A DNA stretch of 63,552 bases, filler included, from Perkinsus chesapeaki ATCC PRA-425 (lineage: Eukaryota > Protista > Perkinsozoa): assembly GCA_013115145.1 (NCBI GenBank). It is 3 parts of 3 records of this genome, joined end to end, with 100 filler letters (N's around TTAATTAATTAA, not from the genome) between each part and the next. Parts side by side here need not be neighbours in the genome. Positions count along the whole stretch, not along the records: positions 56,284 to 63,552 come from JAAPAO010001039.1; 2 more parts are not named here. The stretch is one strand, 5' to 3'. Below the pieces are notes generated by a model. It ran no database searches. It saw only the letters and a program-made list of their open reading frames with translations, and had not been told where the DNA came from. Shown here one piece after another: positions 2,604 through 63,552 of the stretch. The position numbers and the translations under genes were made by a program. The first letter of the stretch is position 1, and each line of letters starts with the position of its first letter.

Positions 2604-5600
2604 ATGGGTCGAGGAGGAGGCTCCGCAGCGGCGGTCCTCTCTGATCTGTGGACGAGCCTCGACACAGTGTAAGGGTCGTTGGAGGCATGTGTCAGGCACT
2701 TTGCCGTCAGATACTTCGCAAGCATTCCTCAATCTCATGATTTAGTCCACGTCCTGCAGGCCCGCCTCAAAGATACACCAGCGGTTGAGGCCTCAGTCAG
2801 GTGGGGAACACTTTCGGAAGGGGTGATACAAATCTCAGCAGTTCCGACAGCGTGTCCGAGTCAACGTCCTGCACCGCTGAAATGAATGCCGAAAGCTTTG
2901 AGATGAGGTGGGCGCGAACGCTTCCCGAAAAGGTTAGGTCTCCTGATCAGGTTCGACGTTTGCTGTGACGATACTTCTCCAGCTGAATCCGAAAGTGCAA
3001 GCGCGAGCGCGCAGACCGGGAAAACCGCGCTAGGTAGATTTGCTTCCGGAATGCGGAGAACTCCTATCAGACGATCGCCGTCGAACCGTCTTGGTGAACT
3101 TCTCCACCTCGCAAGACGCGGAGAACGGAGGCGATCGGTGGGACACCGCGGTAGGCCGCTCAGGGTCGGGGTTGGCTCATGGAGCGGTCGAGGTTCCGAG
3201 GCTCTTGTACGACAGCAAACCGGGGCGACAGTGGATCATGCCGGAGCCGCCGCTGCCGATTAGTGCCTCTCACGAACATGAAAGTACCCCACCGAACGTC
3301 CAGGCGGTCTTGCGCATTTCCAGGGAGTTAGGGCGACGACCTTCGGTGACCTGTACCGAAGTTATAGAAGTGGAGCCGATAAGGGATGGCAGGGCGGATC
3401 GGGGAAAGGAGGGTAAATCTGGCGAAGATGAGGCTTCGGCGCTCCGAGGTGCGCCGGATGATCATGGACGTGTGCGGACAATCTCGCATTTCAGCGCTTC
3501 TGGCGAAAATCGAGGCGAGAAAGAAAGAGCTTTTATGTCCCGTCTTGGAGGCAATAAAGGTTGATCAGAATGTAAGCGACTGCAGCCTGTTGGGGAATGA
3601 TGGGAAGTCGAACGGTGACGAATTTGCATGTGCGGTGGTGAAGAGCCGTGGGGGGGCAACTTGTATCGGTTCTACGCGACGCAGAAGTTTAGATGGCGAA
3701 CGCCCAGAAGCGTTGTTTCCTCGCGTGCTGGGGCATTAAACTCCATATCCTTCTAGAACTCAAAGTGAACTAATTCGACTTCCCAGCCTCCCATCAGGCG
3801 GGCGTCTAGGTTGTTGATTCCGATGCATTGTGGCTCAGGACCGCCCAAATCGGCAAGCATGGTTCGATGCTGACAAGGTCCTTTTGAACTCGTAAGAATG
3901 AATCTCACTGAATTGCCCATGGCTCCAGCTAGTTACGAGGCGAGTCCTCCTCCAACTTCACACAGTGCTTCGGCATCCGCGGTTCACCAGCCCGCACCGC
4001 CGGCGACCAGGTTGTCGTCTCGAAAAAATATCAGCACGCGAGGAGGGAGCACCGCGATAGACCTGCCGGCCTTGGATGAAGCCTTTCTGGCCAAGCTAGG
4101 CCGAGCTCTTAGAGATGGCGAGGAAGTACCCCCTCCTATGGATGGACAGGACACCGAAGTTGATCTTTGCTGTAAGGGGCGTTGGATAGCACCGCCGAGG
4201 GGCTGTGGTTGGGTTGGCTGTGAAGTGCTCCAAAGGGCTTTGACTGTGTGTTGGTTGCAAGGTTCCATATGCGGGGATGGAGATGTAGATGACGATAATG
4301 CTATTCTAATCTGCGATGGCTGTCACTTTGCAGCGCACCAGAAGTGTTATGGGGTCGGAGCAATCCCCGAGCAAGAATGGTGAGCATTTCATAATTTACC
4401 AAAATTCCATCAGAAAATACGCACGAAAGACTGCGGCCTTGGCAATGTAGACCAACAGCGCCTACGACCTCTCCATCTTCCTCAACTGCGTTGTCAAACT
4501 CCCCCGGGGTTCGCCTTGGAAATGCAAACCTTAGCGTTGGTAGCAGGGAGCCATCTAACTCCACTGAAATGCAGTTCTCGGGCGCCAATAAGTGCTGCTG
4601 AAATATGTGGTTCCTAGACTGATGGAAACGTGAAGTGCATTCCTTCCGGGACTAACATCTGCTGTTCCTTTATGACGCCCTAGTAGGAAGGTGGTGAAAA
4701 AGCCGACCAGAGCTCCATGCAATATTTCCTCGCCATTTTCCAAAATTCATCGTAGGTTCTGCCGAAGCTGCTCAGTGTTCCCTCGGGACGCCAATGATCG
4801 GCCCACTGGAGACCGGCCCGTTTGTGTAGGGAACCTTGTGAACTTCGCCACTCCAGCCTGAATCAGGTCCTCTGTGGCCGAGACTCGGAGTTTGTTGGAG
4901 GTGGACTGATGAAGCCAGCAGTGGTCTCAATGCCCGGCAAATCTGGTGCTCGCTCGGGTACGTTCCAAAATGCAAGATGTGGGAATCGAACCTGAGACCT
5001 TTCGCAGACCTAATGCTGGCAGGCAGCACTCCCAGTCCGACATCCCCCTCCAACGGTGCTGCCTCTAATGCGTCCCTCGGCGCATGGGCGCATGTAAAAT
5101 GTGCAGTGTGGATCAGAGAGTGCTCGATTGATAACCCCACCACTGTGATGGAGCCCATAAGAGCCGTTGTAAGCTACCACCCCGCACCGCAGTCAAGATT
5201 TGAGAACCTCTTCAATAAACCGTATTACTTCATACGCCTGCCAACCCGATTTGGCGGGAAAATACTCTATTTGTGGCTGCGGAATTGCTCTCAACTGGAC
5301 ATTTAAAAGGCATATGATTTCATGCCTAACTTAACCCTTGCCAGTGCTCGTGAGCTCAGATTCATCCATCCCGTCGAGACCTAGTGTGTGGAATTTGCAA
5401 GTCCAAGGCAGGTGCGAAGGTCCAATGTGCCTTCGGGAAATGTAGGCCAGGGGATCGACCGGGTCGCCGTAATCGTATCTTAGGTCAGAACTTCTATCAT
5501 GTCAGCTGCGCTGCACGGTACGGTTTAGTTACTGAAGGAACGAGCGGAAATGCCGCTTGGGTGGGTGGTTTGGTGAAGCCGCAGGTTCGATCCCCGGTTA

Positions 5601-8600
5601 CGGCATTTTTAGGCCATTTACTGTCCAAGACACTCTAAACAGCAACAGAAGCAAGGGAACGCTCTCCTTGCGAGACTTAAAGCCTGGCGGAAGTCCGAGC
5701 ATTTCACTCGGCTCTGCCAGGACAAATTTGTAACTCACAGGTTCGATCCCCGGCAGCTCCATTTTATGTTGTCAGATCGCCCCCTATGACCCTCGACTAG
5801 TGACCGCAATGGGGTTCGACGAAGACTGCCGCGATCCCTCTTTGACACTCCAGTGGAAGTTTGACTCTGAAGAGGCTTGTCTTCGTACCACTCTTCCTTC
5901 AAATCATCCACACATTCCCACCCTAGGCCACCTCCTCGAGCCTGTTGAACGTCTTTGCCTCAACGACACTGCCAGAGCCTTGCTTCCACCTATGATACGT
6001 GATGCTCGAGGGGACTGTCCTCTTCTATATCCAGCCCAAACTGGCGGGGCCACCTCAACAGCGACCACATCAGGCGCTGCGCCCGCTGGTGAGTCTCTGC
6101 TCGACCCCCTGTCCGATGGCCTTGACAGGGTCATTGGCTCGGGGAGTAGGAGCGTACGGAATGCACGTTAATACAGCAGTTGGCTCCACCGCGGGGGCTA
6201 CTAGTCAGACCGATGACTACCCTGGTACCCCTTCAATCCTCCTTGGGCAATTCCCGAATCTTAGGTGTCCTCTATCCGGAGAAAGTAGAGGTTCAGTCGG
6301 CCGAGCAGCTCCGGACGCAAACTCACGCAGCGAGCGGTAGGCCTATTGGGTGCTCTCTGGTGCGAAGACACAATGGAGACTTCGACTTCGGCAAATGCGT
6401 TCTTAGCTGAGCACCAGCCCATTTGGGAAGAAACGTTAAATACGCTTACTCCGGAGCCAGTATGCTCTCATGCTCCTGCACAACTTCCGTCTGTCAGTTT
6501 GCGGAAGATGCAACGAATGCCTCATGAGGGCCAACGATGACGGAGCTGCTGCCCGACGCGATGACATGGGGCGACTGGTGTAAGTCGCCGAATGGCCACC
6601 ATGGGACTTGCCGTTCTTCAGGGCTTGCCAGAACTGCGGGCTCACCGTCCATTGGCGATGCTTCCTCCGGCCGGGGCTGCCCCCCTTGAATGTTGTGGAC
6701 TACGAGGACCCCAAGGTGAGGAAGGCACTTCCTTCAGGTGCTTCCAAGTTCGCATCTCTCGTCGTTTTGCAGTTCACTTCGTCAATGTATCATTGCCCTT
6801 ACCCTTTGGCCGCACGCAACCAAGCGGGGCCATTCCTGTGTGAACGATGCAAGTATGTGAAGCAGTTTGGGGCTGCGGAGGAGGAGATGAAAGCGACGGA
6901 AGGGTTCGAGTTAAATGATCAACACGACAGCGACAAGATAACGCATGTAACTGCCGAACCATGCTGGAATACCGTATTTGCAATCGGTCAAGAGCTTTCG
7001 GCCGAGATCACCAGACAGAGTGTTCGTTCTCCTGTTAAGATTATAAATTTCCTTCAATTTTTTGGCCTTCGGTGAGCACATTCGAAGCTAGACCGTTTCG
7101 GTACCGCAAATACTGTCAGCCCCGATAAGATAGATTATCAGTGTTATGTTGTTGAAGATACAGTGTTAGAATCCCTTCTTCTTGTGTGTTTCCCTCAACA
7201 ACTTGCATACCATAACTTTAACCAAATGACGTGCTAGATTATGATGAACCTTGATAGGGCCAAGTCAAACGATTCGCGGTGGTTCAGGTCCAAGAAGACT
7301 CCAGCAACAACAACCACCGTTGTGATCTGGTGAAGTTCTCTGAGACCTGCTGTATCTTGTGCCAGCAGCTTGGTGGTCTCCTAGTTCGAGTCGAGAACCC
7401 AGACGAGCGTCAATGGGACCCCCACGGATTCTGGGTAAGTCACGCTTTGGTGATGCGTCTATCACTCAGTCGTGTCAGGTTCACCCACGGTGCGTTTACT
7501 GGTTACTTCCGACACAATCTCTGAGCCTCAATATGACCACCACACCAATTGACATAAATTCTCATGCACTCATCAAATCGATTCCCAAGGACGTGCGCAG
7601 TGGCGGGCGCGTGCGTTGATGTTACTCGTCACTTAGGCACACTTCAGTTTGTGCTGGATATGTGGCCAGCGTTCCGGTTGCACTGTGAAATGCGCCAAGT
7701 CAGGCTGCTCGTAAAGATCAGGGGAGACAGTCGCCGCTCAAATCGCTGTGTGTTTCAGTCGACGGTTTCATGTGTCGTGCGGCTGGTACACAGGATGCCA
7801 TTTCGTCATCAAAAACTCCTCTGGAGTGGTACGATAATCTGCACGCGTGCGCACGCTATGATTCTACGAAGGTTCTCGCGGGCTCAGCTTGCCGCCCTAC
7901 ATGCGGTGGTCCTGCTACTGCGAGCCAGAATCCAGCGATCGATAAACAAGTGCAGGAGGCTCTGAGAAACGGTGAGTTCCGATCAACACAACTTCGCTCG
8001 ACTCGGTCTCATCAGAGCGAACCCCTTTGAAGCGATACGCCTACTGTTCGGCACACCGGCCACCGAGGCTGACCGGACGGAAGCTTTCGAATGCGGCGGG
8101 TGCGCTTGTGGACGAGTCCAGAATGCTGTCGTTACCGCACTGTAAGGACCCTTCTGGCGATTGTGCAAATTGTCTCCCCTTCAGATGAAAGCCCTCTGCA
8201 CATGCAATACGCAAACGTTGTTAGAGCTCGAGTGGTAAGGTTATCTGTAGAAGTCGGACTTAACCATCTCGTTAGAATCCTACGAATTTATTCGTGCCGC
8301 TCAACCCGGAGGCTGGAATTGCCGCAGACCAGCGGAAGAAGCGAAAGTTGCCGTCGAACGCGCCTGTGCAGACACCGAAAAGTGAGCAACGGCTGTGGTG
8401 GGATTCATCGGCCGAACGATTGCGCCAGAATCTGCCAAACGCAAAGCCAAACGGCGGCGAGTTAAGAGAGACTCCCATGAGACCTCTCCACCGTTGGTGG
8501 CCAGCAGCATCATCAACCGTGATGGCATAAGTAGGCCGACGATTGGAACCAGTTTCACAGTGATGCTGTTCATGCAGCGGAAGTTGTGGACGCGGACGAC

Positions 8601-8893: not shown

Positions 8894-9754
8894 TTTTGCA
8901 ATATCATAAACTGCAACAATCACGTATTAAAGTATTATTTACAATTGCAGCAATCTGATTATATGATTGTCGAGTTACCCAGTCCGGAATCGGAACCCAC
9001 TGCCAATTCACAGTATCGAGTATAACCCCATCCCTTACGCGTAAAAGCTGCCCATACCGGAGCATAGGTGTAGACAGCGCTGCTACCTAATGCACGCGAG
9101 GAACTACTTTATCTAGTCGCTAGAATTGATCATTTGTAGAGCCAGGGAAACATAGCTCAGCAGCACAGCTTCGGAAATGCGAATTCATCCGTCTTCGACC
9201 GCCTCCATAACAGATCCGCCCTCAACTATAATGACACTATTTTCAATTTCCCCTTGGTGTAACTTCCAAGCTCACTATCAAACCCAACTCTATCACGTAG
9301 AAACATCCCTTGCAAAACACTTCTATTTCTTCCGGAGTTTCCCACTACAGTCCCCATATATCGAAGCGCTACGTCGGCTTTACGATACCTTCGGGGTGGC
9401 CGGTCTTCAAAAATCTGTTCCGCAACACCTCAAGGAATACTCCGACGTCGAGATATTACTGATTAACACAAAACCGTGACTTTTCTTGTTTTCTAAGAAG
9501 CCGCGCCATTATATTTCCGAGTAATTATTATCGTGGTACTTATAACTATCGCTACTTAACGTGTGAATAGTAGTAGACACAGTAAACTTGTGAAACTTCT
9601 TCCAGTACAACAACCAACATCGCAGGAAAACTTCGGGCCAAGCATCTTTAACAAATGATGAATACTTGTCTTATATATACAATGACAAACAATTACTATA
9701 AGTCATATTCAACAAGACGACACTATCACCACTTGGTGGACGATGACGGAAGGC

Positions 9755-10333
9755 TTAATTGGGGCAGTCTCTGGCGAAATGGCCGGTCTGACCGCACTTG
9801 AAGCAACTCTTTCCCTCGGCGCCTAAGATAATAAAGCAAATCCAAACTGACCGAAGCTTCAAGGGGCATTACCGCGGCCACGGGGAGCGCGCTCAGCCTC
9901 GGGCCTGGTGTCCTCGTTGGGGCAGTCACGAGCGAGATGACCGGTCTCACCGCAACGGAAGCAGGCGCGAGTATCGGGGGCGGTGCAGTCCCTAATAACA
10001 TACGCTATTATTATACAGCAAAGCAACGAGGCAATTACCTGGCGAAATGGCCGACCTGGCCGCACTTGAAGCAAGGCCTCTGGTTAGTCTGCTCGTTGGG
10101 GCAATCACGAGCGAGATGGTCGGGCTTGCCGCAGTTATAGCAGTTCATGGGGCGGCGACCAGAAGGCTGAGAAATACACATTACCGAATTTAAGGTGGCG
10201 TATAGCCTACGCGAGTGCTTGAGGCCTGGGGGCAATCTCTGGCGAAGTGACCAGGCTCGTTGCAGATAAAGCACTTTGAAGAAGAAACATGCTCGGTTGT
10301 TGTAGTGGTGGGAGTGGCAGCGGTATCAGTCAT
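9755..10333 (-). CDS. CNBP/GIS2/UMSBP-like protein with five CCHC zinc knuckles
   Basis: CFICNEPGHFARDC, CYNCGKPDHLARDC, CFKCGQVGHFARDC, CFRCGETGHLARDC, CFKCGQTGHFARDCPN*, joined across short GT-AG introns. ATG at 10333. Confidence 0.9.
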
Positions 10334-10493
10334 TTCGAGAAAACGTATGATAACAGGACCCTGACGATGACAGCAGTACACAATCTTCTAAGCTTGGATA
10401 GCGCCCTCGAAAACGAGTTCGAAATCAAATAGATCAGCACGGCGAGCGCCAGTTACAAATATCTTGTGACTATAGCCATAGCGGAGCGAGAAA

Positions 10494-10529
10494 AAGGTCG
10501 CGGGTTCGAACCCCGGCCAGGTCACTTTT
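10494..10529 (+). other. tRNA 3'-end-like module (Trp-like end) between two minus-strand CDSs
   Basis: AAGGTCGCGGGTTCGAAC CCCGGCCAGGTCA CTTTT. Lies in a 56-nt GT..AG-bounded minus-strand segment whose intron status is unproven. Confidence 0.7.
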
Positions 10530-10656
10530 GCATAATGGTAAATGTAGCACTGTTGAAGACAACGCAATAGAGGGGAGAAACTGATCACTTATGGGGCAAG
10601 TATAACAATATGAATTCACAATGCACTACGTATGATACACACCAGCACAAAATAGA

Positions 10657-11529
10657 TCAAAACCGAACCGAGTGCATTTCTCTTTTCAAAAGAATCTCCA
10701 TCAGTTCTAACGGCAGTATCTCGGCACCGTGCGTTTTGGGAACATGACAGTCCCGGGCCACGAGCAAGGCCCGGATAGTCTCTTCGAGCAAGCGGGCACC
10801 ACTGAGCACTGTGGAGCGATCGCTCGACGCTAACATGTGCATGGGGTCCCCTTCGCTCTTGTCAAATCCGAACGGCACACCCAAGATGTAAGATACCATG
10901 CTGGTTAAGTGTGCAAGATACAAAACAGCTACACTCGGGAACTGGTCCATAGCTTGAGGCTTCATCGCCCCACCAATGCCTGTTATCATCGGGAAGCCTC
11001 GAATGGTGCGGTAGCGACCGCTGCAATTCTCGATCGGGTACAGCTCGTTGGTGATCTCCTTGAGCATAACCAGCCGTATGTAGTATCGGCAAAACACCAT
11101 GCTCCTCAGCGCTCTCTCCAGCTTCTCAGCGTTAGCCATTGGCTTCATCTTAACACGGTAGCCCAAAGACTGCAACTGTCGCTCGGCCACCTTCACAATA
11201 CTGTCGTTGCATTCATCCTTGTTCAGTTCCACTGACCTCAGCTTCCGTTGCAAACCGTCACGTTTCGTCTTCTCGGCGTGGATGGCTAAGGCGAGCTCTT
11301 GCCTGCGCGTGCGCAGCCGCTCTATCCGGATCATGCGTTCTCGTCGAGGATCCCTCTTCATAATGTCGTCTATTTTTTCGCACACAACAGAGGCCCTATT
11401 CGTCACTGCCAGATACTGTCGGTAAAGCTCCCACGTAGCTTCAACTTGAGCGATCAGAGCGTCGATGGACACGGACCGCACTTCTCCTTGGTAGGCTCCA
11501 CCGTGGAGACCAGAGGGGGCGGAAGCCAT
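10657..11529 (-). CDS. UVRAG/VPS38 (ATG14-family) coiled-coil protein, PI3K complex subunit-like
   Basis: Open frame with a coiled coil followed by LVMLKEITNELYPIENCSGRYRTIRG and AVLYLAHLTSMVSYILGVP, resembling the UVRAG/VPS38 domain. Start assumed at MASAPSG; the frame is open to 11949. Confidence 0.6.
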   Translation of the reverse strand: MASAPSGLHGGAYQGEVRSVSIDALIAQVEATWELYRQYLAVTNRASVVCEKIDDIMKRDPRRERMIRIERLRTRRQELALAIHAEKTKRDGLQRKLRSVELNKDECNDSIVKVAERQLQSLGYRVKMKPMANAEKLERALRSMVFCRYYIRLVMLKEITNELYPIENCSGRYRTIRGFPMITGIGGAMKPQAMDQFPSVAVLYLAHLTSMVSYILGVPFGFDKSEGDPMHMLASSDRSTVLSGARLLEETIRALLVARDCHVPKTHGAEILPLELMEILLKREMHSVRF

Positions 11530-13024: not shown

Positions 13025-16000
13025 TTAGTCCGCGCGATTGCCGCTGGTGGCGCTTCGCTGATTTCCACCACCTGCCGCAGCCTCCATGGTCACATACAGC
13101 GCATTCGAAGTGCTATGGCGAAGGGACGACAACAGACTTCGCTGGTGATGATGGTGCTGCTGCTGCTCTGCTGTGGGGCCCTCGGTGTATCGACCAGAGA
13201 AGTGAGAGGGGGAGGATATGGACGATTCACGAGGAACGTTACCGAGATGCTCTGATGCGACGGAATCTGAAACAAAGCATGCGATCCGAGGCCGTGGCTC
13301 GGGAGAACGACTTCGGAGAGATTTCGGAGAAAATAGATCCCCAACAACAGAAGTAGCCCCAGACAAGATTGTTGCTATACATTTCACCCTTCCCCAGTTC
13401 CTAATTGCCGGAGCGCTGTAGAAATGCGAAAGAGGTCCCAAATTCCTCCCCTGAGAACTACTGCAGACACTACTGTCCTGTCATATAAGGCGCAATGTGA
13501 CGCAGAAGCCTAATCCCCTCGAAATCCTCACCTTTAGCATCGTCAACATCAAAGCTATCAGGCAACTTAATACTGGGGGTGCACGACAGTGAGAACAATG
13601 TGCGGCCAACCTGATCATGGACATATAATAGTACTATTTGGCGGACCATATAGATACGAGCATACAGCAACCAAGTAAGAACTTTCGATGTGATGCCATG
13701 TCTCACCTGAATAGCAGTCGGTGCTCCATCAGCCGGCAGAGGTATTTCATTTCCACGGACAGCAACTAGAGTACCAAACTTCGACATGAGGTCCTGAATA
13801 ACAACAAACGCATCATCACACAATTTCGTGGCGCGCGAGAATCACCTGGATGAATACATGACCGTTCTCATATCGGAGACTTGCGTGCTTGCGGGAGATT
13901 GAGACCTGAATTAGCGAAAAAATATCATCCGCGTCTGCTGCCATAGAGTCAAGAGCCCTTCCAATATACTAATAATTTCGCTCTAACATCCCCACATTGT
14001 AGTGCGGTTTCCTGAAGCATAAACTGTAAAGAGGATAACTTTACGGGAAAAGTTCGAGACCTCCTCTCGGCTTCCCGATCCTATCGCTAAGGAGCTTAGT
14101 TACTTGGTGCTCCACGGAGAAAGTGAGCACTAGGAAGATTACAATAGAATATTACGGATCAGTAAACCCATTAAAACGGTGAAATTGAAGCCACTAGAAG
14201 CTCCGAACTGTTCTATAAGGATTGGTAATTACACACTAAATCGATCCCTGCTTCATCTGGTCGGCGTCATGACGTCGAGCCCCCGGACTTACATCAGTAA
14301 TCCTAACCTGGCTTTCATGCCCTCTACCAATAACAACGGGAGTGTTATCAGCTAAACTGATAACATGTAGACCAGAAGGGGTAAGGGAGGATGTCGAAGA
14401 CATGGAAGTGGGGTCTGAAGTAGTAGATGATGATACCACACAACGAACCAATTCAATTTCGGGTCCCAATGAAGTGTAACAAAATTAATCAACAAGTCAT
14501 TTGTTCCTAGACGCAATGCATTTAATGTTGAAGTTGGCTCTAGAGACATATTTGAAATATTCGGAATTTCCGCATTGAGAACACTTTTCGATATCCGAGT
14601 AACACATTTCAGGCCACCACCAGCAGGTCAGCTTACCAGCATTCTCCTCGTTGCAGGCAAGAGACTCCAATACAATAATGGGCGCGCGAAGTTGGGGTAC
14701 TTCTACTAGGGTGGTGAGACTGTTGGAATTAGGCAACTTTACCTGTTAAAGATAATACGATCAGATAGCGAAGAATTACATCGGGCATGGATAGAGTGCG
14801 TAAAAAAACCAGAAAAACATCTATCACGAACGAAAGGATTTCGAAGGAGAGTTGCCAAGTGATACTTGCCGGGCAGCTAAGCACCCGAAAGATGCTAATC
14901 TGACGCAAATTCCATCAGCATTGGAGACAAATCTCACTCGAGATAGCTTCTACAAGAGCGAAGAAGATGTTCAATCCAAGCCGAATGTGAATATAAAATG
15001 AGACTAAGCGAAGTCTATCAGTACGGATAGTGTGGTATAGGGTAGTGTCAGGCAGAGCAGACCAATATACGGTTATACGAGGTACGAGTTATAACAAGCA
15101 TTATAATACAAATATATTCTATAAAGAAATTAAATTAAGATATTAAATTAAGATACTCTATAACGATATTAAATTAAGATATCATATAAAGATACTTAAT
15201 AAAGTTGTTCTATAAAGATATATAAGACATGCATCGCTTCCTTACATATGTGGGATAAACTTGTTTGCAGAGTTCACAAGATAACTGCTTGTAGAAAAAA
15301 TGACAAGTAGCGAGAGCATCAGATTCATCCGGCAAATCCAGACGACCGTTAATCCAACGCCTTAGGCATGACAGATGAACGTATCTAAATAAACAGCCGC
15401 CGTGGAAATGCGAAGGTCCTCCAAACCTACCTGATACTGCCACTGCAATTGCACGGGGCAATCATCGGGTCGTCATCCTCGGCACCTAAGAGCACAGTTC
15501 ATTTACGAAAACTTTACGGGGCGGGAGATTTTCCAACGAAAAAAAGTTGAGAATGGACGACAATGCTAATGCACCCTTGGCCATTGGTACCCGAGACGTA
15601 ATCGCACAGCTAGATGAATCTAGGGTTGAAGCGAGAGAGTCCGAACCGATTGCCGAACCCCAAGAGCAACCGTGGAATCTGGGAGATCCTGCATTGTCGA
15701 ATTTAATAACTTGAGCACGTTTGATAGGGCGAACTTCCGAGTTGGAGGATACTTCGTTATTTTTCAAAAATTCCTTACCGATGACAAAAGCCTACCGGGG
15801 ATTCGCATATACATTGTGTCCGTCGCGGCTGATTCCCGTTGTATCGAGCAAAGCATATCTCACCTTCCATGAGGCATATTTTGCAAACAAGTTTCTTGCT
15901 TTCTTCAGTGCCACCTCCAACAGCTACCACAACTGATGAACCTAAGATACCTCACGTACTTGATGATACGTTAATACACATACTGCACTGGCAACATAGG

Positions 16001-56283: not shown

Positions 56284-56845
56284 ACTCTTAAGGTTTCACC
56301 ATAAAAGAAGGCACAACCTCAAACGAGAAATGATACACCATCCACAACTGTGAGCAGTAACATTGTAGGCATTACGAAATGGCCAGCATTTTCCCACTTC
56401 ATGAAACTTTTGTCGCCACGAGCTAGCCAGACTCTTAAGGCTTCACCATAAAGGAAGGCACAGCGTCAAACCAGAAATGATACATCATCCACAACTGTGA
56501 GCAGTACCATTGTAGGCACGACGAAACGGTCAGCAACTTCCAACTTCGTGAAATTTTTGTCGGCAGGGGCTAGCCAGACTCTTAAGGTTTCACCATAAAA
56601 GAAGGCACAACCTCAAACGAGAAATGATACACCATCCACAACTGTGAGCAGTAAAATTGTAGGCATGACGAAACGGCCAGCATTTTCCCACTTCGTGAAA
56701 CCTTTGTCGCCACGAGCTAGCCAGGCTCTTAATTGCTTCACCATAAAAGAAGGCACAACCTCAAACCAGAAATGATACACCATCCACAACTGTGAGCAGT
56801 GACATTGTAGGCATGACGAAACGGCCAGCAACTTCGCATTTCATA
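56284..56845. repeat. 147-bp tandem repeat, about 3.8 copies visible after an assembly gap
   Basis: Anchor (A/G)CTCTTAA at 56284, 56431, 56578, 56725. ACAACTGTGAGCAG at 56344, 56491, 56638, 56786. Confidence 0.93.
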
Positions 56846-56919
56846 CAACTAGTTTACAACTATTAACAATTTATATGGTTGAACCTTACAACACAAGACA
56901 CCTACAATCTGCAGAAATG

Positions 56920-59900
56920 TGTGAATCACTGTGAGTGATTCACTGAACAGGGTGCACGCACTGTGTGTGAGAGTTTATAGTCCAACGCCCGGATAACCCG
57001 GAGACTCTCCGGCGGACAGTGCCCGGATAACAGTTCTAAAAATGCACTGCCTTTGATAGTCCGCACCGCGCACTAAACATTCTCACTGCCTTGACCTTCC
57101 TAAGGCCTTTTGTGAGGGTTCAAACAGAGTACAAAAAACAGACGCGCACTGTGTTTCTCTGGTTGCAGACTGCCACTGGCAGTTCAACACAAACAGAACT
57201 CTATCGTAGCTTTCGTGACTTTACTCGAATAATCATGGCTGATTCACTTGACCCACAGCAGAAAGAGGCTTATGACTGCATAATGAGCAGCATATGCCAC
57301 GAAGAGGATAATCCTCGTCACTTCTTTCTGGCAGGATATGCCGGGTGTGGTAAATCGCATGTTCTACGCATGCTTATCGATAACCTGCCAGGCGACTTCA
57401 AGCCCGTAGTCCTTGCTTGGACTGGGCTGGCGGCAAGCCTGCTTCCACATGGGATGACTGTGATGTCCTTTTGTGGACTCCAGTTCGAGTCGTCTGGTGC
57501 TGTCGGCGATAATGGCTATATGCGCTGCAAGAGTGACTTAGAACAACGTATGGTGGGGTATCTTAGGCGACTTGACGTAGAATGGGGTACGGTGAGACCA
57601 GTGATCTTCCTCGACGAGATCGGCGCCATACATGATACCGTACTTGATGCCTTGTCTGGAGCTTTCCAGCAGCTGCGGCCTCGAAAGTATCGTCAAGAAC
57701 CGTTTGGATCTATTCCGGTCATCGTGAGTGGAGACCCCTGCCAGCTCGGAAGGATCGAATTCTTCAAAGAATCACCAGCGTATCCTCCTGCGGATTATCC
57801 TACTCACCCCTTCTGGTCGAGTTCAACGTGGCGGGCTATGAACCCTATCGTCCTGTATCTGACGAATTTTCACAGGGGTGGCGATGGAGCTTATCTAGGA
57901 ATGCTCTCAGAGATTCGTTCAACTGAACGACGCAAACCTGGGTTACCTTCATTCTCAGCCGAGTCTGTTCGGGTGCTGGCCAAAATACGGGATCGTGATG
58001 GAGGAAAGGTTGCACCAAGGTGAGATACCGGAAAAGAGTTTGTCTGAAAGTTTACAAAGTGATGCTGTGATAGTACGTAATACTGTCTTATCTACAGGCT
58101 CAACCAGTCCGGCTGCACCGTGCAATGCATATTATAAATATGATATTAATGATATGAGTGATATGATATTGCTCTTATAGTTAGAATCGAAGTGGTAAAA
58201 ATCAGAAATATTCTCCCTGGAGCTATTGCATTCCGTATAGAGCTTAATACTCGTATTGACAATTCCATTGAATAAATTAGGTGGCTGAGACTTCAACTTT
58301 GATTACCTAGGATGCTCCTAGTAGGAGTTGTCTCCAACCGGAATCGAAACATGCGTGGTTAGAAACACGAATCCATATCAGCACACACAATCATACACCC
58401 CATATAGACTATATGATATAGTATGGTTCCCACACTACGTAATATAGGCAAAAAACATAGCAGAGAGCTGTTAGCTGATACACTTCAGGTTCTCTCACAC
58501 TATAATCTGCCTCACCAATGCGGAAGTAGATGCACACAATAAGGAGCACCTGGAAGCACTCGCTGGCGAGCTGACCTGCCTTCATGCCGTCGACGAGTTC
58601 TGCAACACACCGGCGAGGTTCAGGCTTCAAGACGTTGAAGCTATGGGATTCAAGAAGACGCTTTATCTGAAGGCAGGCTGCCGTGTCATAGCATCTGCTA
58701 ATGACCCCGCAAAGAGATTCGCTAACGGAATGGCCGGCACGGTCCGGCGCATACAATACATTTCCGACGAGCCTGTGGTTACAGTGCAGTTTGACACGGG
58801 TGCAAACTTGGTGAATATTCGTCGGCAAACTTTTGAGGTCAAAGCTCCTCCCCTTGGGACAAGTGTCTTCACTCGTAGACAAGTGCCCCTGGTCGTGTGT
58901 GCTGCGATGACAGCACATAAGGTAGTCGGTGCAACTCTAGAAGGGGCATGGGTCCATCTGCCCTTTTCTCATGCAACTGAGAGAGATGACGACTTGGTCG
59001 CTGAGTATTGGTCTAGGCCTTGGTTACTCGGTGCGTTGTACACGATCCTCAGTCGGGTTGGAGATAGTTCGAGAATAAAGGTGCACTCCCTGCGTCGCAC
59101 GGATGAACCGGGGCGTCTGAATCCGATATTCTCCATGGATGATGAAGCTCTAAAATTCGATGCCGCTTGTCGGAGGAAAAATTATCTGAAGAACCATTCA
59201 TTGCCTTCGGCTGAGCCAGGCCGTGGCAGCAGCTTGAGATCGCCCAACCATAGTGATCCGCCCCCGATCAGTAGCCAAATGGAAGAGATTAAGAGTAGCA
59301 TCAACAACCTGGGCATCACTTTGCGTGACTCACTCTCCGAGCAATTTCTTCAGTTGGTATTGTCACAGCACTTCTCAGCAGGCCATGGAGCCACTTCGTC
59401 GCAGGGATCCCCGATAAACCCTGTAATGTATTGTCTTATGAACTCTGGCCTGAATACCAAAGTGTCTAAGCTTTCGGTCGGCTCACAGCTCGAGTTCTAC
59501 CAGAAGCTCAGTGAACGCCTAAATGCCTTGGACGGGGCTACGGCAGCAACCGATATCGAGAATATGGCTGACGAAATCCTCCAACGGCAAAGAAGGGAGC
59601 AGCAGGTGAGGTTGGATCCGAGTGACTACGGTCCTCCTGAACCAGCTGAAAGAGTGAGGAGCAACGAGTCAACACCAAGCACGAGGAGTAACGCCGCTTA
59701 CCTGAACCCTGCGAGCATCGAGTCAGATGATCAGCAGCCTCGCGAACATGGCTCACCGGACTCGGGTAGTGCGTCGCCTGCCCAGGGCTCGAACATCGAC
59801 GCGGAGGCATCCCCAGAACAGGCTGATGAGCATGTGCAAGCTGACAATGGCACTGAGATCGAAGAAAGCGAGGCAAGTGACTTCGAGTTGCAAGAAGAAC

Positions 59901-62900
59901 AACCAGGAGATAATATCCCACCGCTGGGTGAAGATGAGTTCGGCGATGTACCATTCCTCGTATATCGAGGGGGTATCTATGACGTCTTGAAGGTCTTCTT
60001 GAAACGGAATAGCTATTTCAAGTTGGCTGGGCGTCGAGCTCTCGAAAGCATGCGATTTGGTCGTTATCGATGCATCTTGTTGTGTAAGCGCACGGCGGTT
60101 TGTCGCAAATGGAGGCGATGGCCGCAGTACCTATGCAAATACGCTAAAGTTCACGTGCGCTCGGAGGGAGGGTATACCTATTTCTACCCTCTCCGCGACG
60201 TCGAAGCTACCCTCCTTGAGTGGAAAACTCACGCCGGGGGGCATCCATATGGCACCGAGCAGTGCCGATCCGACTACGTTCCTCCAGATATAGCGGATCA
60301 CTGGGCCGAAATGATTGCCAAGAATCCAACGGCCTCTCTCAAAGAGCTAAAAGTCGGTACCAATGAGCGCTACATGAGGACCGAGTATTGCGAGGAAACC
60401 ATGAGATTCTTGGCCAATCGCGGTCTGTCTCGGCCAGAAAAGATCCGAGGGCTTTATCGATCTATCAGGGAAAATGGGAAAGCAGGCCTCAGTGTTGCCG
60501 AATTCGTGACGCAGGTCGAGCCAATTCTGCACTCCCATGAAGACCTCGCCACAAAAGTGAAGGATATATTAAAGAGCCTTGGATCTATAGAGAGCGGAGG
60601 AGGCGCGCCTGTTGACTTTGACCGAGTTCCTGATGCTGATCGATGCATACTCCTCGACAATCTGCTTTCCGAGCGAGAGCTTGTTAACGGTAGATATGAA
60701 GTCAGCGAGTTCTGTGCAGTCTTTACAAGTGCTCGCATGTTGCGGAATATGGCGATCGCCACAACTTGGGGAGTAGATGGAACCTACAATATGGTACATG
60801 CTGACCTAGCGCTGATCGTCGTTTGCGCCCTACCCCGAGGATCTACGGCTAGACCGATAGCTACGGCTATTGTACACACCGAGTCCGCTCGGTCTGCAAG
60901 TCATCTTCTCCGGCTTCTGTTAGATGCGGCCAAAGCTCTCGATATGCATGAAGCTGCCACCCCAAAAGAAGTGGTGCTTGATGGTTCGCCTGCCCTGAGA
61001 AATGCAATCATGCAGGCCTTTGGTCCAGAGACGAAGCTAGTAAGCTGCTACTACCACGCAAAGCAGCGAGCTAAAAGAGCGAAGGCTACCGCTAACCTTA
61101 GTCGCGCTATCTGGCGCCAAATTAGCGGTGACCTTGACTTGATGGGAGAAGCGTGGAGTAGGCGAGAGTGGGTTCGACTCAAGAACTTGTTCGTCGAGAA
61201 GTGGGGGTCAGGTGAGCTTGGGTAGAGATTCCGATAACAATAATGTACATCACATGTATATATAGCATAATATACAGCCTGACAAATGATAGTATAATAT
61301 CGCGCTTTTTCGGAAATTCTCGTCTGTATGGGCCCGCCCGTGGTTCAAACTCGGATGGATATTTGGCAGGCTGTATAACCAGTGTATCAACGCAACACTT
61401 AGCCGATTCGGCAATTTCTATATAAGCTAATTACTTGTATCATAAGTTTATATCTGTGAAGTTAATTGAATAGTTCTAACTTGGATCAGTTAGAAGCACT
61501 ATCACCATCTCGTATGATTTATATCACCAAGCATATAATAAATCGTATATTCTCTCAGATCCAGCAGATTCATATCAGTGACCTATTGTATTAACTCGCG
61601 ATATAAATGAATGTATTCAGTATTTCGATAATGAGTTCTATAGAGCATTGTGTATTACTATGTAATAGGATCCCTGTTATAGGAAACTCGACGATTGACT
61701 AGACTCGGTTGTGCTATATAATACAGCTTATATTAACGGTGTGAATAATTCATCTACCAAATTTTCTTCATCATATCTCTAGATTCATGCATGGTGTATT
61801 AGCCCTGATTCATATCATTTTCCTTGGTTACTAAATTTGGTCCTTATATTTCATCTACCTCGCTTTCGAATCAATCAGTCGCTTTCGAATCAAAAGCAGT
61901 GTAGACGCGGCGTTAATATAAATTACATCTATTCATATTATATCATATATTTACATCTACAAACTGTCACCCACAGTTCTCGCATGGTTGATCCTTTCAG
62001 CTGGTACTGCCAACCTCACTCCCTATGAGAGAGAGGGGATACGCATCTTCCTCAAGGAATTCGGAGGTTATCTAGACGAGTCGAGCTGGAGGAGTCAGTG
62101 GGGCCACTACTCGAGCGAGGTTGCCGGCCCGCGCACTAATAATGCCGTGGAAAGATTTAATGGTGAGCTCAAAGCCACCGTGTTACCTTGCCGCTACCGG
62201 AAAACTCTTTCTGATATGGGGGCCTTTCTGAAATGCGGAGCAAAATGGATGCTCCTCTCACAATATGGTCGCGAAGAGCCCAGTAGAGGACAGGGCACCA
62301 GGGAACTGAGGAACACAGCGGCCATTTTCTTCGAGAAGGATTATTATTCTGTGGTACCTCGATCCTGGTGCTCAAGTCGATTTCAAGATACGGCACAGCA
62401 TGAGAACCAGTGGCTTTTTCTAAGGAATGTGAAAGGGAAATTGCCTTCTGGTGCAACGTCCCTGAGAGATGTTGTATTCAGCAGTGACAACTCAGATGCC
62501 AAGAAGTTTGTCGCCAGTGACTACAGTTCACTGGCCGAGGCAAGGCAGCTGAGAGCCCTCTACTCTATTGTGACCTATCGGGAGACGTCCGACTGGTCAG
62601 TGGCGCCGCCGGGCGGGCCTTGGTGTACATGCCAAGCCTGGCACAAGGCCTTGGTATGTCCGCACGTGATGTGTGTCTCTTATGTTACTGGAAAAGATGA
62701 CTCGCCAGCTGCGCGAAAGGATTGGGCTATTTTGCGTACCTATTTCCCCAAGCCTCCCCAGCGGCGTCGGAGGGACGGTCGCGTAGACGATCAACGACTA
62801 CCGAAGGACGTTCGATACGGTCTTAATGCACCTAACAAGAGAGCTAAGAAGCGGCATCAGCAGCCTTCGAGTACCACTACTACCGATCAACCAGAAGTGC

Positions 62901-62950
62901 CAGCTTCCGCGGCTTCCGAGGTTAGGGGCCATAGTGATGTCACTTCATAG
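56920..62950 (+). mobile_element. Mutator-like (MULE) DNA transposon carrying a PIF1 helicase; termini not defined
   Basis: Encodes the fusion ORF listed below. Hairpins and short direct repeats occur at 56921-57032. No inverted partner end or TSD found inside the window. Confidence 0.7.
57235..62950 (+). CDS. PIF1 helicase - MULE DDE transposase - SWIM fusion, 1485 aa; exons 57235-58019, 58489-61211, 62001-62950
   Basis: PIF1 motifs: GYAGCGKS, AWTGLAA, IFLDEIG, VSGDPCQLG, CLTNAEVDAHN, LYLKAGCRVI..FANGMAGTV, QVPLVVCAAMTAHKVVGATL, LYTILSRV. MULE motifs: WGVDGTYN, VVLDGSPALRNAI, SCYYH, RTNNAVERFNGELK. SWIM: CTCQAWHKALVCPH. Both GT-AG introns are phase-matched (2 and 1); spliced length 4458 nt with no internal stop. 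Confidence 0.88.
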
Positions 62951-63552
62951 TTCGGGATGGCCTTCCTGATACCTGATCTGTGAATGGAGGTTAGAGTTTA
63001 CAGCGGCTTTGCAGCACCTATTAATTCAGTTTCTAGTATTATTATCGTCTAAGCAGAGTTTTACTAAGCAGGGTTGAGGAGACTAGATCTAGCCTCCCAG
63101 GCGGCTATAAGCCAGTTGGAATCTCACGGTTTCGCTGCAGGCTAACGACAATCTCTCATGTTTTTTTCTGTATTCGGAAATCACACAGTAATTCAGAGAT
63201 CATTTTCGCATATAAAGGTATCATATTCACGAATAGGGACATGAATTCATCAAAACATGAAACTCATTTCTCAATTAGGCCGCACAACTCGGGCCATCAG
63301 TGGTAACCCACCACCGTCAAATCGATAACTCGTGAATATAATGTCGCTAGTAGGGATCCCGTATTCGCGAATGTGACGCTGTATTACGGCGGCCGTGACG
63401 ACGTCGTGGATGTCTTGGGAAATAAGAGCCTTTCTAGGTTTCTAAGCTTCTAGATTACGGTACATACGACGTAGGAAGTTCGGCTGAGAAGTGAGGAGAA
63501 TTTTCGGGAATTTCAGTAGATCTGCGGCGAGAAACTTATAACCCAACGAGGC

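Follow-up and report, generated by a model that had tools for sequence, protein, structure and literature searches.

Does a single gene of Perkinsus chesapeaki, a member of a genus of oyster and clam parasites, encode both a PIF1 helicase and a DDE transposase of the Mutator-like element (MULE) superfamily, and does this gene belong to a mobile element? The question is raised by a locus in a window of 63,552 nucleotides (the whole stretch of P. chesapeaki ATCC PRA-425 DNA analysed, to which all positions given without a locus label refer). The piece studied spans positions 56284-63552 (7269 bases) and corresponds to the 7.3-kb contig JAAPAO010001039.1. On the evidence presented below, it probably carries an intact transposase gene with three exons, belonging to a Perkinsus-specific lineage of helicase-bearing MULEs that is mobile or was so until recently.

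A scan for open reading frames (ORFs) on the plus strand revealed three of them, at 57091-58023, 58643-61225 and 61988-62950. Joining the segments 57235-58019, 58489-61211 and 62001-62950 yields 4458 nt, equal to 1485 codons plus the stop codon, with no internal stops. The original prediction, in which three ORFs are connected by two phase-matched GT-AG introns into one frame of 1485 amino acids (aa), is therefore borne out by the ORF scan, the splice sites and the stop-free joined frame. In addition, the G+C content of the exons is 52-53%, versus 35-38% for the introns. The gene is composed as follows:

57235-58019, plus strand: exon 1, aa 1-261 and two bases of codon 262, starting at the first in-frame ATG
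58020-58488, plus strand: intron 1, 469 nt, GT-AG (GTGAG..CAG), phase 2, 38% G+C, splitting the codon of aa 262
58489-61211, plus strand: exon 2, aa 262-1170, a single continuous ORF bridging helicase and transposase
61212-62000, plus strand: intron 2, 789 nt, GT-AG (GTGAG..CAG), phase 1, 35% G+C, splitting the codon of aa 1170
62001-62950, plus strand: exon 3, aa 1170-1485 and the stop codon

Upstream of 57235 no in-frame ATG was found, and the 951 nt that precede it contain no plus-strand ORF reaching 60 aa; Rfam and tRNA scans of the whole piece were empty. Intron 1 falls between the two RecA-like halves of the helicase, while intron 2 is positioned between the CxxH motif and the catalytic glutamate of the transposase. 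Both predicted introns have good comparative support. Specifically, the NCBI gene model P0001, which derives from a 96%-identical contig, uses the second junction exactly, and several paralogue gene models cross the first junction without insertion or deletion. Moreover, when the spliced protein was used in tblastn searches, interruptions at aa 262 and at about aa 1170 recurred among seven paralogous loci, despite a protein identity of only 35-45%: the former position is interrupted at loci L004, L006 and L007, the latter at L003, L004, L006 and L008, with gaps of about 50-400 nt. Over both positions together, the gaps range from about 50 to about 810 nt. Two small RNA runs labelled with the same species, neither of which covers the region, gave zero reads.

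Exon 2 taken alone is one open frame of 907 codons, which contains helicase motifs IV-VI (the C-terminal half of the helicase) together with the two aspartates and the CxxH motif of the MULE domain (the first two-thirds of the transposase core). Since half of the helicase and the MULE core share one ORF, the fusion does not depend on the splice predictions. The same arrangement bears on the idea that the locus makes two products, in which alternative splicing, intron retention or internal initiation would yield mostly unfused helicase and transposase, the fusion being a minor isoform. Reading on into intron 1 does terminate at once, at a TGA overlapping the GTGA of the donor site, and the P. 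olseni annotation includes a 285-aa model limited to the N-terminal part of the helicase. Exon 1, however, encodes only half a helicase, motifs IV-VI being located in exon 2 in frame with the transposase, so that a functional helicase requires the removal of intron 1 and is then necessarily fused; in addition, the linker and the middle region between the two enzymes are conserved in sequence among the paralogues. We consider separate products very unlikely.

The helicase itself, proposed from the start to be a full PIF1 enzyme at the N-terminus, proved to be complete, occupying about 480 aa, and its recognisable parts map as follows:

57334-57357, 57607-57624 and 57727-57747, plus strand: Walker A, Walker B and motif III of the PIF1 N-terminal RecA-like domain, in exon 1
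58490-59143, plus strand: helicase domains 2A/2B with motifs IV-VI, motif V (HKVVG) at 58910-58930

The Pfam PIF1 model (PF05970) matches exon 1 with an E-value of 2e-18 and 67 bits, against a cut-off of 25.9. Walker A (GYAGCGKS) corresponds to aa 34-41, Walker B to aa 125-130 and motif V (TAHKVVG) to aa 403-409; an alignment showed that motifs I, II, III, IV, V and VI are all present and conserved among the paralogues. In a sequence search of the PDB both halves of the helicase matched solved PIF1 structures from yeast, human and bacteria, and the N-terminal half scored about 1e-9 against PIF1 chains versus 3e-3 against Helraiser, the bat Helitron. Exon 2 was also modelled with AlphaFold from an alignment of 36 family sequences (mean pLDDT, the predicted local distance difference test, 77), and the picture was concordant: residues 1-199 of the model superpose on PIF1 domains 2A/2B with a Z score of 17.6 and a root-mean-square deviation of 2.0.

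Two peculiarities of this helicase that had been pointed out beforehand were confirmed. The first is the departure of motif V from the HKSQG consensus, which is found lineage-wide (HKVVG, HKLVG, HKTVG), a more distant sub-lineage keeping the glutamine (HKLQG); because the paralogues share it, the alignments indicate a family trait and not decay. The second concerns the start of the protein, where Walker A was said to lie about 30 residues in, leaving no place for an HUH Rep nuclease. Given that Walker A begins at aa 34, that no ORF lies upstream and that the paralogues begin at the same residue, the predicted protein has no room for a Rep domain and does not have one; consistently, the Pfam scan of the gene gave no match to Helitron_like_N.

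The second enzyme encoded by the gene is a MULE transposase, for which the following parts were mapped:

60488-61210, plus strand: MULE RNase-H-like core with the first and second aspartates and CxxH, in exon 2
62138-62161, plus strand: catalytic glutamate, in exon 3
62624-62665, plus strand: SWIM motif, CxC..CxH, in exon 3
62738-62947, plus strand: basic C-terminal tail, in exon 3

The Pfam MULE model (PF10551) matches exon 2 at 8e-11 and 42.7 bits (cut-off 27.6), so that in the profile hidden Markov model searches both PIF1 and MULE exceed their curated cut-offs. The anticipated D..D..CxxH..E set was located at D1025 (WGVDGTY), D1093 (VVLDGSP), C1115xxH1118 and E1220 (NNAVERFN), and the alignment showed that these columns, as well as the Cys/His columns of the SWIM motif, are conserved across the Perkinsus paralogues. 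Residues 667-907 of the exon 2 model superpose on the transposase of ISCth4, a member of the IS256 family, with a Z score of 9.5; among solved structures, this one comes closest to the catalytic core (Z 9.5 and 8.8, Foldseek E-value 6e-4), and the model also aligns to retroviral integrase cores with Z scores of 8-9. As regards the SWIM finger, the pattern was recovered (CTC..CPH, aa 1378-1391, CTCQAWHKALVCPH), while the Pfam SWIM model gave no match at E<=0.1. The motif is nevertheless supported, as a sequence pattern, by its conservation in paralogues and by UniRef, which labels the 97%-identical P0001 a SWIM-type domain protein.

Between the two enzymes, exon 2 encodes three further regions:

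59279-59614, plus strand: conserved helical region, aa 526-637
59615-59878, plus strand: acidic disordered linker
59900-60331, plus strand: Cys/His domain, aa 733-876

The acidic linker described in the original prediction is indeed present: aa 638-745 contain 28 Asp/Glu against 4 Lys/Arg and are disordered in the model. The Cys/His segment, which had been compared to the DNA-binding finger of MULEs, turned out to be a conserved domain with the block C..C..WRxW..C..W..H.H..C that, modelled alone, folds confidently (pLDDT 89). Its assignment to a finger class did not follow, as Pfam gave no match and the structural search no significant neighbour, FAR1/FRS and WRKY emerging only as non-significant leads (E-values 0.16-0.5). 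The helical region of about 110 aa that separates the helicase from the acidic stretch is conserved in the paralogues and reaches pLDDT values of up to about 90; it has no Pfam match.

The architecture just described is not confined to this locus. An exhaustive profile search with exon 2 returned 23 cluster representatives at E<1e-30; ten of these were looked up, and eight belong to P. olseni, P. marinus or P. chesapeaki, the other two being JGI/IMG clusters of metagenome 3300059473. At least 15 gene models span both the helicase and the MULE regions. The paralogues sit at non-syntenic loci beside unrelated genes, and many copies are truncated or broken. Searching for further copies and building separate phylogenies of the helicase and DDE domains had been suggested together with the original prediction, and both steps were informative. 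For the C-terminal half of the helicase, the tree unites the 15 Perkinsus sequences in a single clade, apart from 83 other PIF1-like helicases (support of 100 in the Shimodaira-Hasegawa-like approximate likelihood ratio test, SH-aLRT). The MULE core tree also brings the Perkinsus sequences together (SH-aLRT 84) and recovers the same two sub-lineages; both are quick trees on short alignments without an outgroup. Since helicase and transposase each form one Perkinsus clade with congruent sub-lineages, the trees support one old ancestral fusion in Perkinsus; they do not point to a donor of the helicase.

These results also bear on the question of whether the fusion is an artefact: a helicase of Helitron origin and an unrelated MULE might have been placed side by side by chance or nested one in the other, or the assembly might be chimeric. 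Such an origin might be suspected given that PIF1 helicases are otherwise typical of Helitrons and that the contig is short and ends in repeats. It is already contradicted by the data, and we give it practically no chance: the helicase C-terminal half and the MULE core are joined within one uninterrupted ORF and thus are not nested independent elements, the same architecture is found in independent assemblies of three species, and the two halves give congruent clades. Furthermore, the gene has no Rep domain, and the 25 commonest Pfam families of the 64 nearest helicases outside Perkinsus are PIF1 and general P-loop or helicase domains, with no Helitron Rep among them.

Two groups of metagenomic sequences, both from metagenome 3300059473, extend this picture. 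The only fusion found outside Perkinsus, P0046, is a 1168-aa single ORF on a contig of 5376 bp with PIF1 and MULE (as well as Transposase_mut) domains; it is a singleton, only 26-27% identical to the protein described here, and both trees place it on a long branch, apart from the Perkinsus sequences. It may be a second, independent PIF1-MULE fusion. In P0155/P0016, a 1065-aa single ORF, an OTU cysteine-protease domain takes the place of the helicase and is followed by the same Cys/His, MULE and SWIM regions. This protein falls within the MULE clade of Perkinsus, where it joins the P0021 sub-lineage (SH-aLRT 89), and its placement suggests a swap of the N-terminal module, PIF1 versus OTU. A search of the ESM Atlas returned ordinary MULE clusters only, with scores below 0.7.

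Do these genes reside in mobile elements? Two of the paralogous loci display both terminal inverted repeats (TIRs) and target-site duplications (TSDs). In P. chesapeaki, the element at L002 (5558-12911, 7.35 kb) has 115-bp TIRs that are 96.5% identical, and a perfect 9-bp direct repeat, CCTTCACAC, lies immediately outside both ends; its terminal motif, GGGTCACAC, is absent from the other loci. This copy has lost the Walker A region, its coding sequence starting with Walker B just inside the left TIR. The element of P. olseni, at L004 (2696-17729, 15,034 bp), is bounded by inverted arms of 579 bp, 98% identical and each carrying 42-bp subterminal repeats, and is flanked by the perfect 9-bp repeat CTGTTAAAG; it lies between two host genes and abuts both. 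Its gene is an apparently complete PIF1-MULE-SWIM fusion (aa 5-1456 matched), directly upstream of whose helicase start a 3.5-kb minisatellite of 32/96-bp units is found (4318-7864). The combined TSD and TIR scan had no match in three other loci, so that these matches are not expected by chance. Nine-bp TSDs with long TIRs are the signature of Mutator transposons, whose TSDs measure 8-11 bp and typically 9 bp. The ends of both elements, taken as sequence signatures, therefore identify L002 and L004 as insertions made by DDE transposition.

The closest counterpart of the gene under study is a sister copy in the same species, L001 (JAAPAO010000902.1, 133-3711), which is 96% identical in DNA from window position 59996 to the end of the piece. 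This sister is damaged, having a 1-bp insertion after window position 60096 and a TAT to TAA change at window position 62741 (Y1417), and its homology ends abruptly at L001 position 133 (window position 59996). The closest protein, the P. chesapeaki model P0001 (97% identical, annotated as 547 aa), is the surviving fragment of this damaged copy. The frameshift and premature stop in L001, like the loss of Walker A in L002, are decay typical of transposons. Divergence from L001 amounts to 1.2-2.1% in the exons, 2.9% in intron 2 and 3.3% in the 3' flank, and over 720 codons the ratio of nonsynonymous to synonymous substitution rates (dN/dS) is 0.28. This value indicates constraint, and as a sequence comparison fits an active transposon lineage and a host-kept gene alike.

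On either side of the gene the piece contains:

56284-56830, no strand assigned: 147-bp tandem array, 3.7 copies, 89% matches, extending from the contig edge to 405 nt before the ATG
62951-63552, no strand assigned: 3' flank, homologous to L001 (92% with indels) up to the contig end

Since the homology with L001 persists up to the very end of the contig, the repeated unit has its 3' boundary beyond the piece. By analogy with the L004 array, which has the same position relative to the helicase start, the 147-bp array is probably an internal minisatellite of the element; the two arrays share no sequence. Termini that are invisible in a contig of this size would be expected if the element resembles that at L004. 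The 5' flank was also compared by BLAST with the 7-kb tail of L001 and with the remaining loci, giving no match.

Several observations weigh against the interpretation of this locus as part of a mobile element with a working helicase. An inverted-repeat search and the TSD and TIR scan found no inverted termini or TSD within 56284-63552, and the same types of scan found no TIR or TSD in L003, L006 or L008. Protein identity between this copy and the two bounded elements reaches only 26-37%, and the subfamily of this copy has only two detectable members; with a dN/dS of 0.28, this fits a host-maintained gene equally well, and the two contigs could be haplotypes. In addition, motif V reads HKVVG and not HKSQG, so that helicase activity is no more than predicted, and the role that we propose for it is one that we infer.

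Part of this evidence favours domestication, in which a PIF1-MULE transposon would have given rise to an immobile host gene, represented by this copy and perhaps by the paralogues without TIRs in L003 and L006, that is kept for a task such as DNA repair, recombination or programmed rearrangement. The intact frame with all its motifs, the purifying selection with respect to the sister copy, the few copies per subfamily, the old and conserved intron positions and the missing TIRs here and in L003, L006 and L008 are all compatible with such a gene, and domesticated MULEs are known in another alveolate group (PMC3558436). On the other hand, the contig is too short to show termini, and relatives exist with young TIRs (96-98% identical) and TSDs; the paralogues are found at unrelated loci, beside different genes, truncated or broken copies are numerous, and an active transposon lineage, too, should show purifying selection between its copies. 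As regards a comparison with the domesticated MULE genes described elsewhere (FAR1/FHY3-like genes, the macronuclear MULE genes of Oxytricha), the ends of this copy lie outside the piece; relatives have TIRs and TSDs and occupy unrelated loci, and L003 and L006 show no inverted repeats. We regard domestication as unlikely. Of the two options left by the original prediction, a helicase-equipped MULE lineage or a domesticated fusion, the former is thus favoured by diverged paralogues in three species, their non-syntenic positions and the TIRs and 9-bp TSDs of two relatives.

How does this lineage relate to known transposons? By its catalytic domain and, in the relatives, its TIRs and TSDs, the gene belongs to the Mutator/MULE superfamily, and the pairing with a helicase remains a variation within it. 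With MuDR, Jittery, Hop, Phantom and other MULE clades the gene shares the DDE domain with the D..D..CxxH..E set, the C-terminal SWIM motif and an upstream Cys/His domain, and its relatives share with them TIRs of about 100-600 bp, subterminal repeats and 9-bp TSDs; unlike them, it adds an N-terminal PIF1 helicase, the conserved helical region and the acidic linker. A 2019 survey of MULE clades describes OTU, SET, FAR1, PMD and similar accessory domains and mentions neither a helicase nor alveolates (PMC6446971), and the Oxytricha genome paper reports 21 MULE-domain proteins in P. marinus, one of them with SWIM, again with no mention of a helicase (PMC3558436). No published description of a PIF1-MULE fusion was found in the full-text literature searched, Repbase and Dfam lying outside that search, and the family appears to be undescribed. 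The Perkinsus members are currently annotated as 'hypothetical protein', 'ATP-dependent DNA helicase' or 'SWIM-type domain-containing protein', and public annotation already shows both Pfam domains on some of the Perkinsus proteins.

A transposon-encoded PIF1-type helicase of superfamily 1 (SF1) fused to a transposition enzyme is a feature shared with Helitrons, and the helicase of Helraiser (PDB 7LCC) matches structurally with a Z score of 13.6. Here, by contrast, the HUH Rep nuclease is missing, the partner of the helicase is a DDE transposase, and the helicase sequence is nearer to cellular and bacterial PIF1 than to Helraiser. Furthermore, the Perkinsus elements have TIRs and 9-bp TSDs, whereas Helitrons are not known to have either. 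A Helitron is therefore ruled out by the lack of a Rep domain, the presence of TIRs and the TSDs made, and a Helitron origin of the helicase is unsupported by both the PDB E-values and the domain content of the 64 nearest helicases.

Precedent for the recruitment of helicases by eukaryotic DDE-type DNA transposons is provided by AcademH and KolobokH (PMC10799480, PMC10045372). These elements belong to other transposase superfamilies, and their helicase domains are described as DEAD/Helicase_C of superfamily 2 (SF2), which sets them apart from the PIF1/SF1 enzyme found here (PMC10799480). With a MULE transposase and a PIF1/SF1 helicase, identity with either is ruled out. The IS256 family, which includes the structurally nearest catalytic core, that of ISCth4, is bacterial and has neither helicase nor SWIM. 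It is the accepted prokaryotic relative of Mutator, and ISCth4 uses a copy-out/paste-in pathway. Finally, MuA/MuB, IstA/IstB of IS21 and TnsB/TnsC of Tn7 also employ a P-loop NTPase that works with a DDE transposase, which is a functional analogy with no homology claimed; in these systems the ATPase is a separate protein of the AAA+ type that selects targets, and not a cis-fused SF1 helicase.

In the mechanism that we propose, the present copy would lie inside a TIR-bounded element whose ends are beyond the 7.3-kb contig. The DDE domain would bind and cleave the TIRs, with the Cys/His and SWIM domains serving DNA binding, and its core would perform both cleavage and joining, while the tethered 5'-3' helicase might use ATP to separate the strands, either at the ends or at the break in the donor. 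Specifically, the helicase could open terminal or subterminal DNA for synapsis and cleavage; it could act as an ATP-dependent partner in target capture, analogous to MuB, IstB and TnsC; or it could promote DNA synthesis of the strand-displacement or break-induced type at the donor site, whereby the element would be retained or copied and transposition would become effectively replicative. This last option is proposed because cellular PIF1 has a role in recombination-coupled synthesis and because of the copy-out pathway of IS256. In its strongest form, it would have the MULE enzyme nick or cut the ends and the tethered helicase then drive strand-displacement or break-induced, D-loop-type synthesis, the element being copied and not merely moved; we consider this unlikely. 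Were it true, it would represent a self-encoded replicative DDE transposition in eukaryotes, independent of Helitrons and of the SF2-helicase Academ and Kolobok lineages.

PIF1 helicases in eukaryotic transposons are known mainly as partners of HUH nucleases in rolling-circle Helitrons, and here one is joined to a DDE cut-and-paste enzyme. The fusion would represent a third, independent instance of helicase capture by DNA transposons, old enough to have diversified over three Perkinsus species, with some copies that are young and bounded. It offers a natural test case for the contribution of a helicase to DDE transposition, be it in end opening, target choice or replicative repair. In addition, it flags as transposon genes a set of Perkinsus genes now labelled hypothetical, helicase or SWIM-type. 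This copy and the L004 element of P. olseni, both apparently intact, are candidates for an endogenous transposon system in protists for which genetic tools are scarce.

Some minor features of the P. olseni loci were also recorded. An apparent 8-bp TSD in L004 (2957/17468) was discarded as an artefact, as it lies within the long arms. In L008, an inverted pair of 68 nt was rejected as termini, having no clean ends or TSD. Downstream of the L008 paralogue, several tandem 324-nt units are inverted with respect to a single unit 4-5 kb away (9692-10984 and 14692-15015, 95-96% complementary); their location is not that of termini of the PIF1-MULE gene. Within the equivalent of intron 1 in L004, a 182-nt inverted repeat (8944-9125 and 9202-9383, 93% complementary, 76-nt spacer) looks like a small hairpin or an insertion of the miniature inverted-repeat transposable element type, which may explain the length of that intron.

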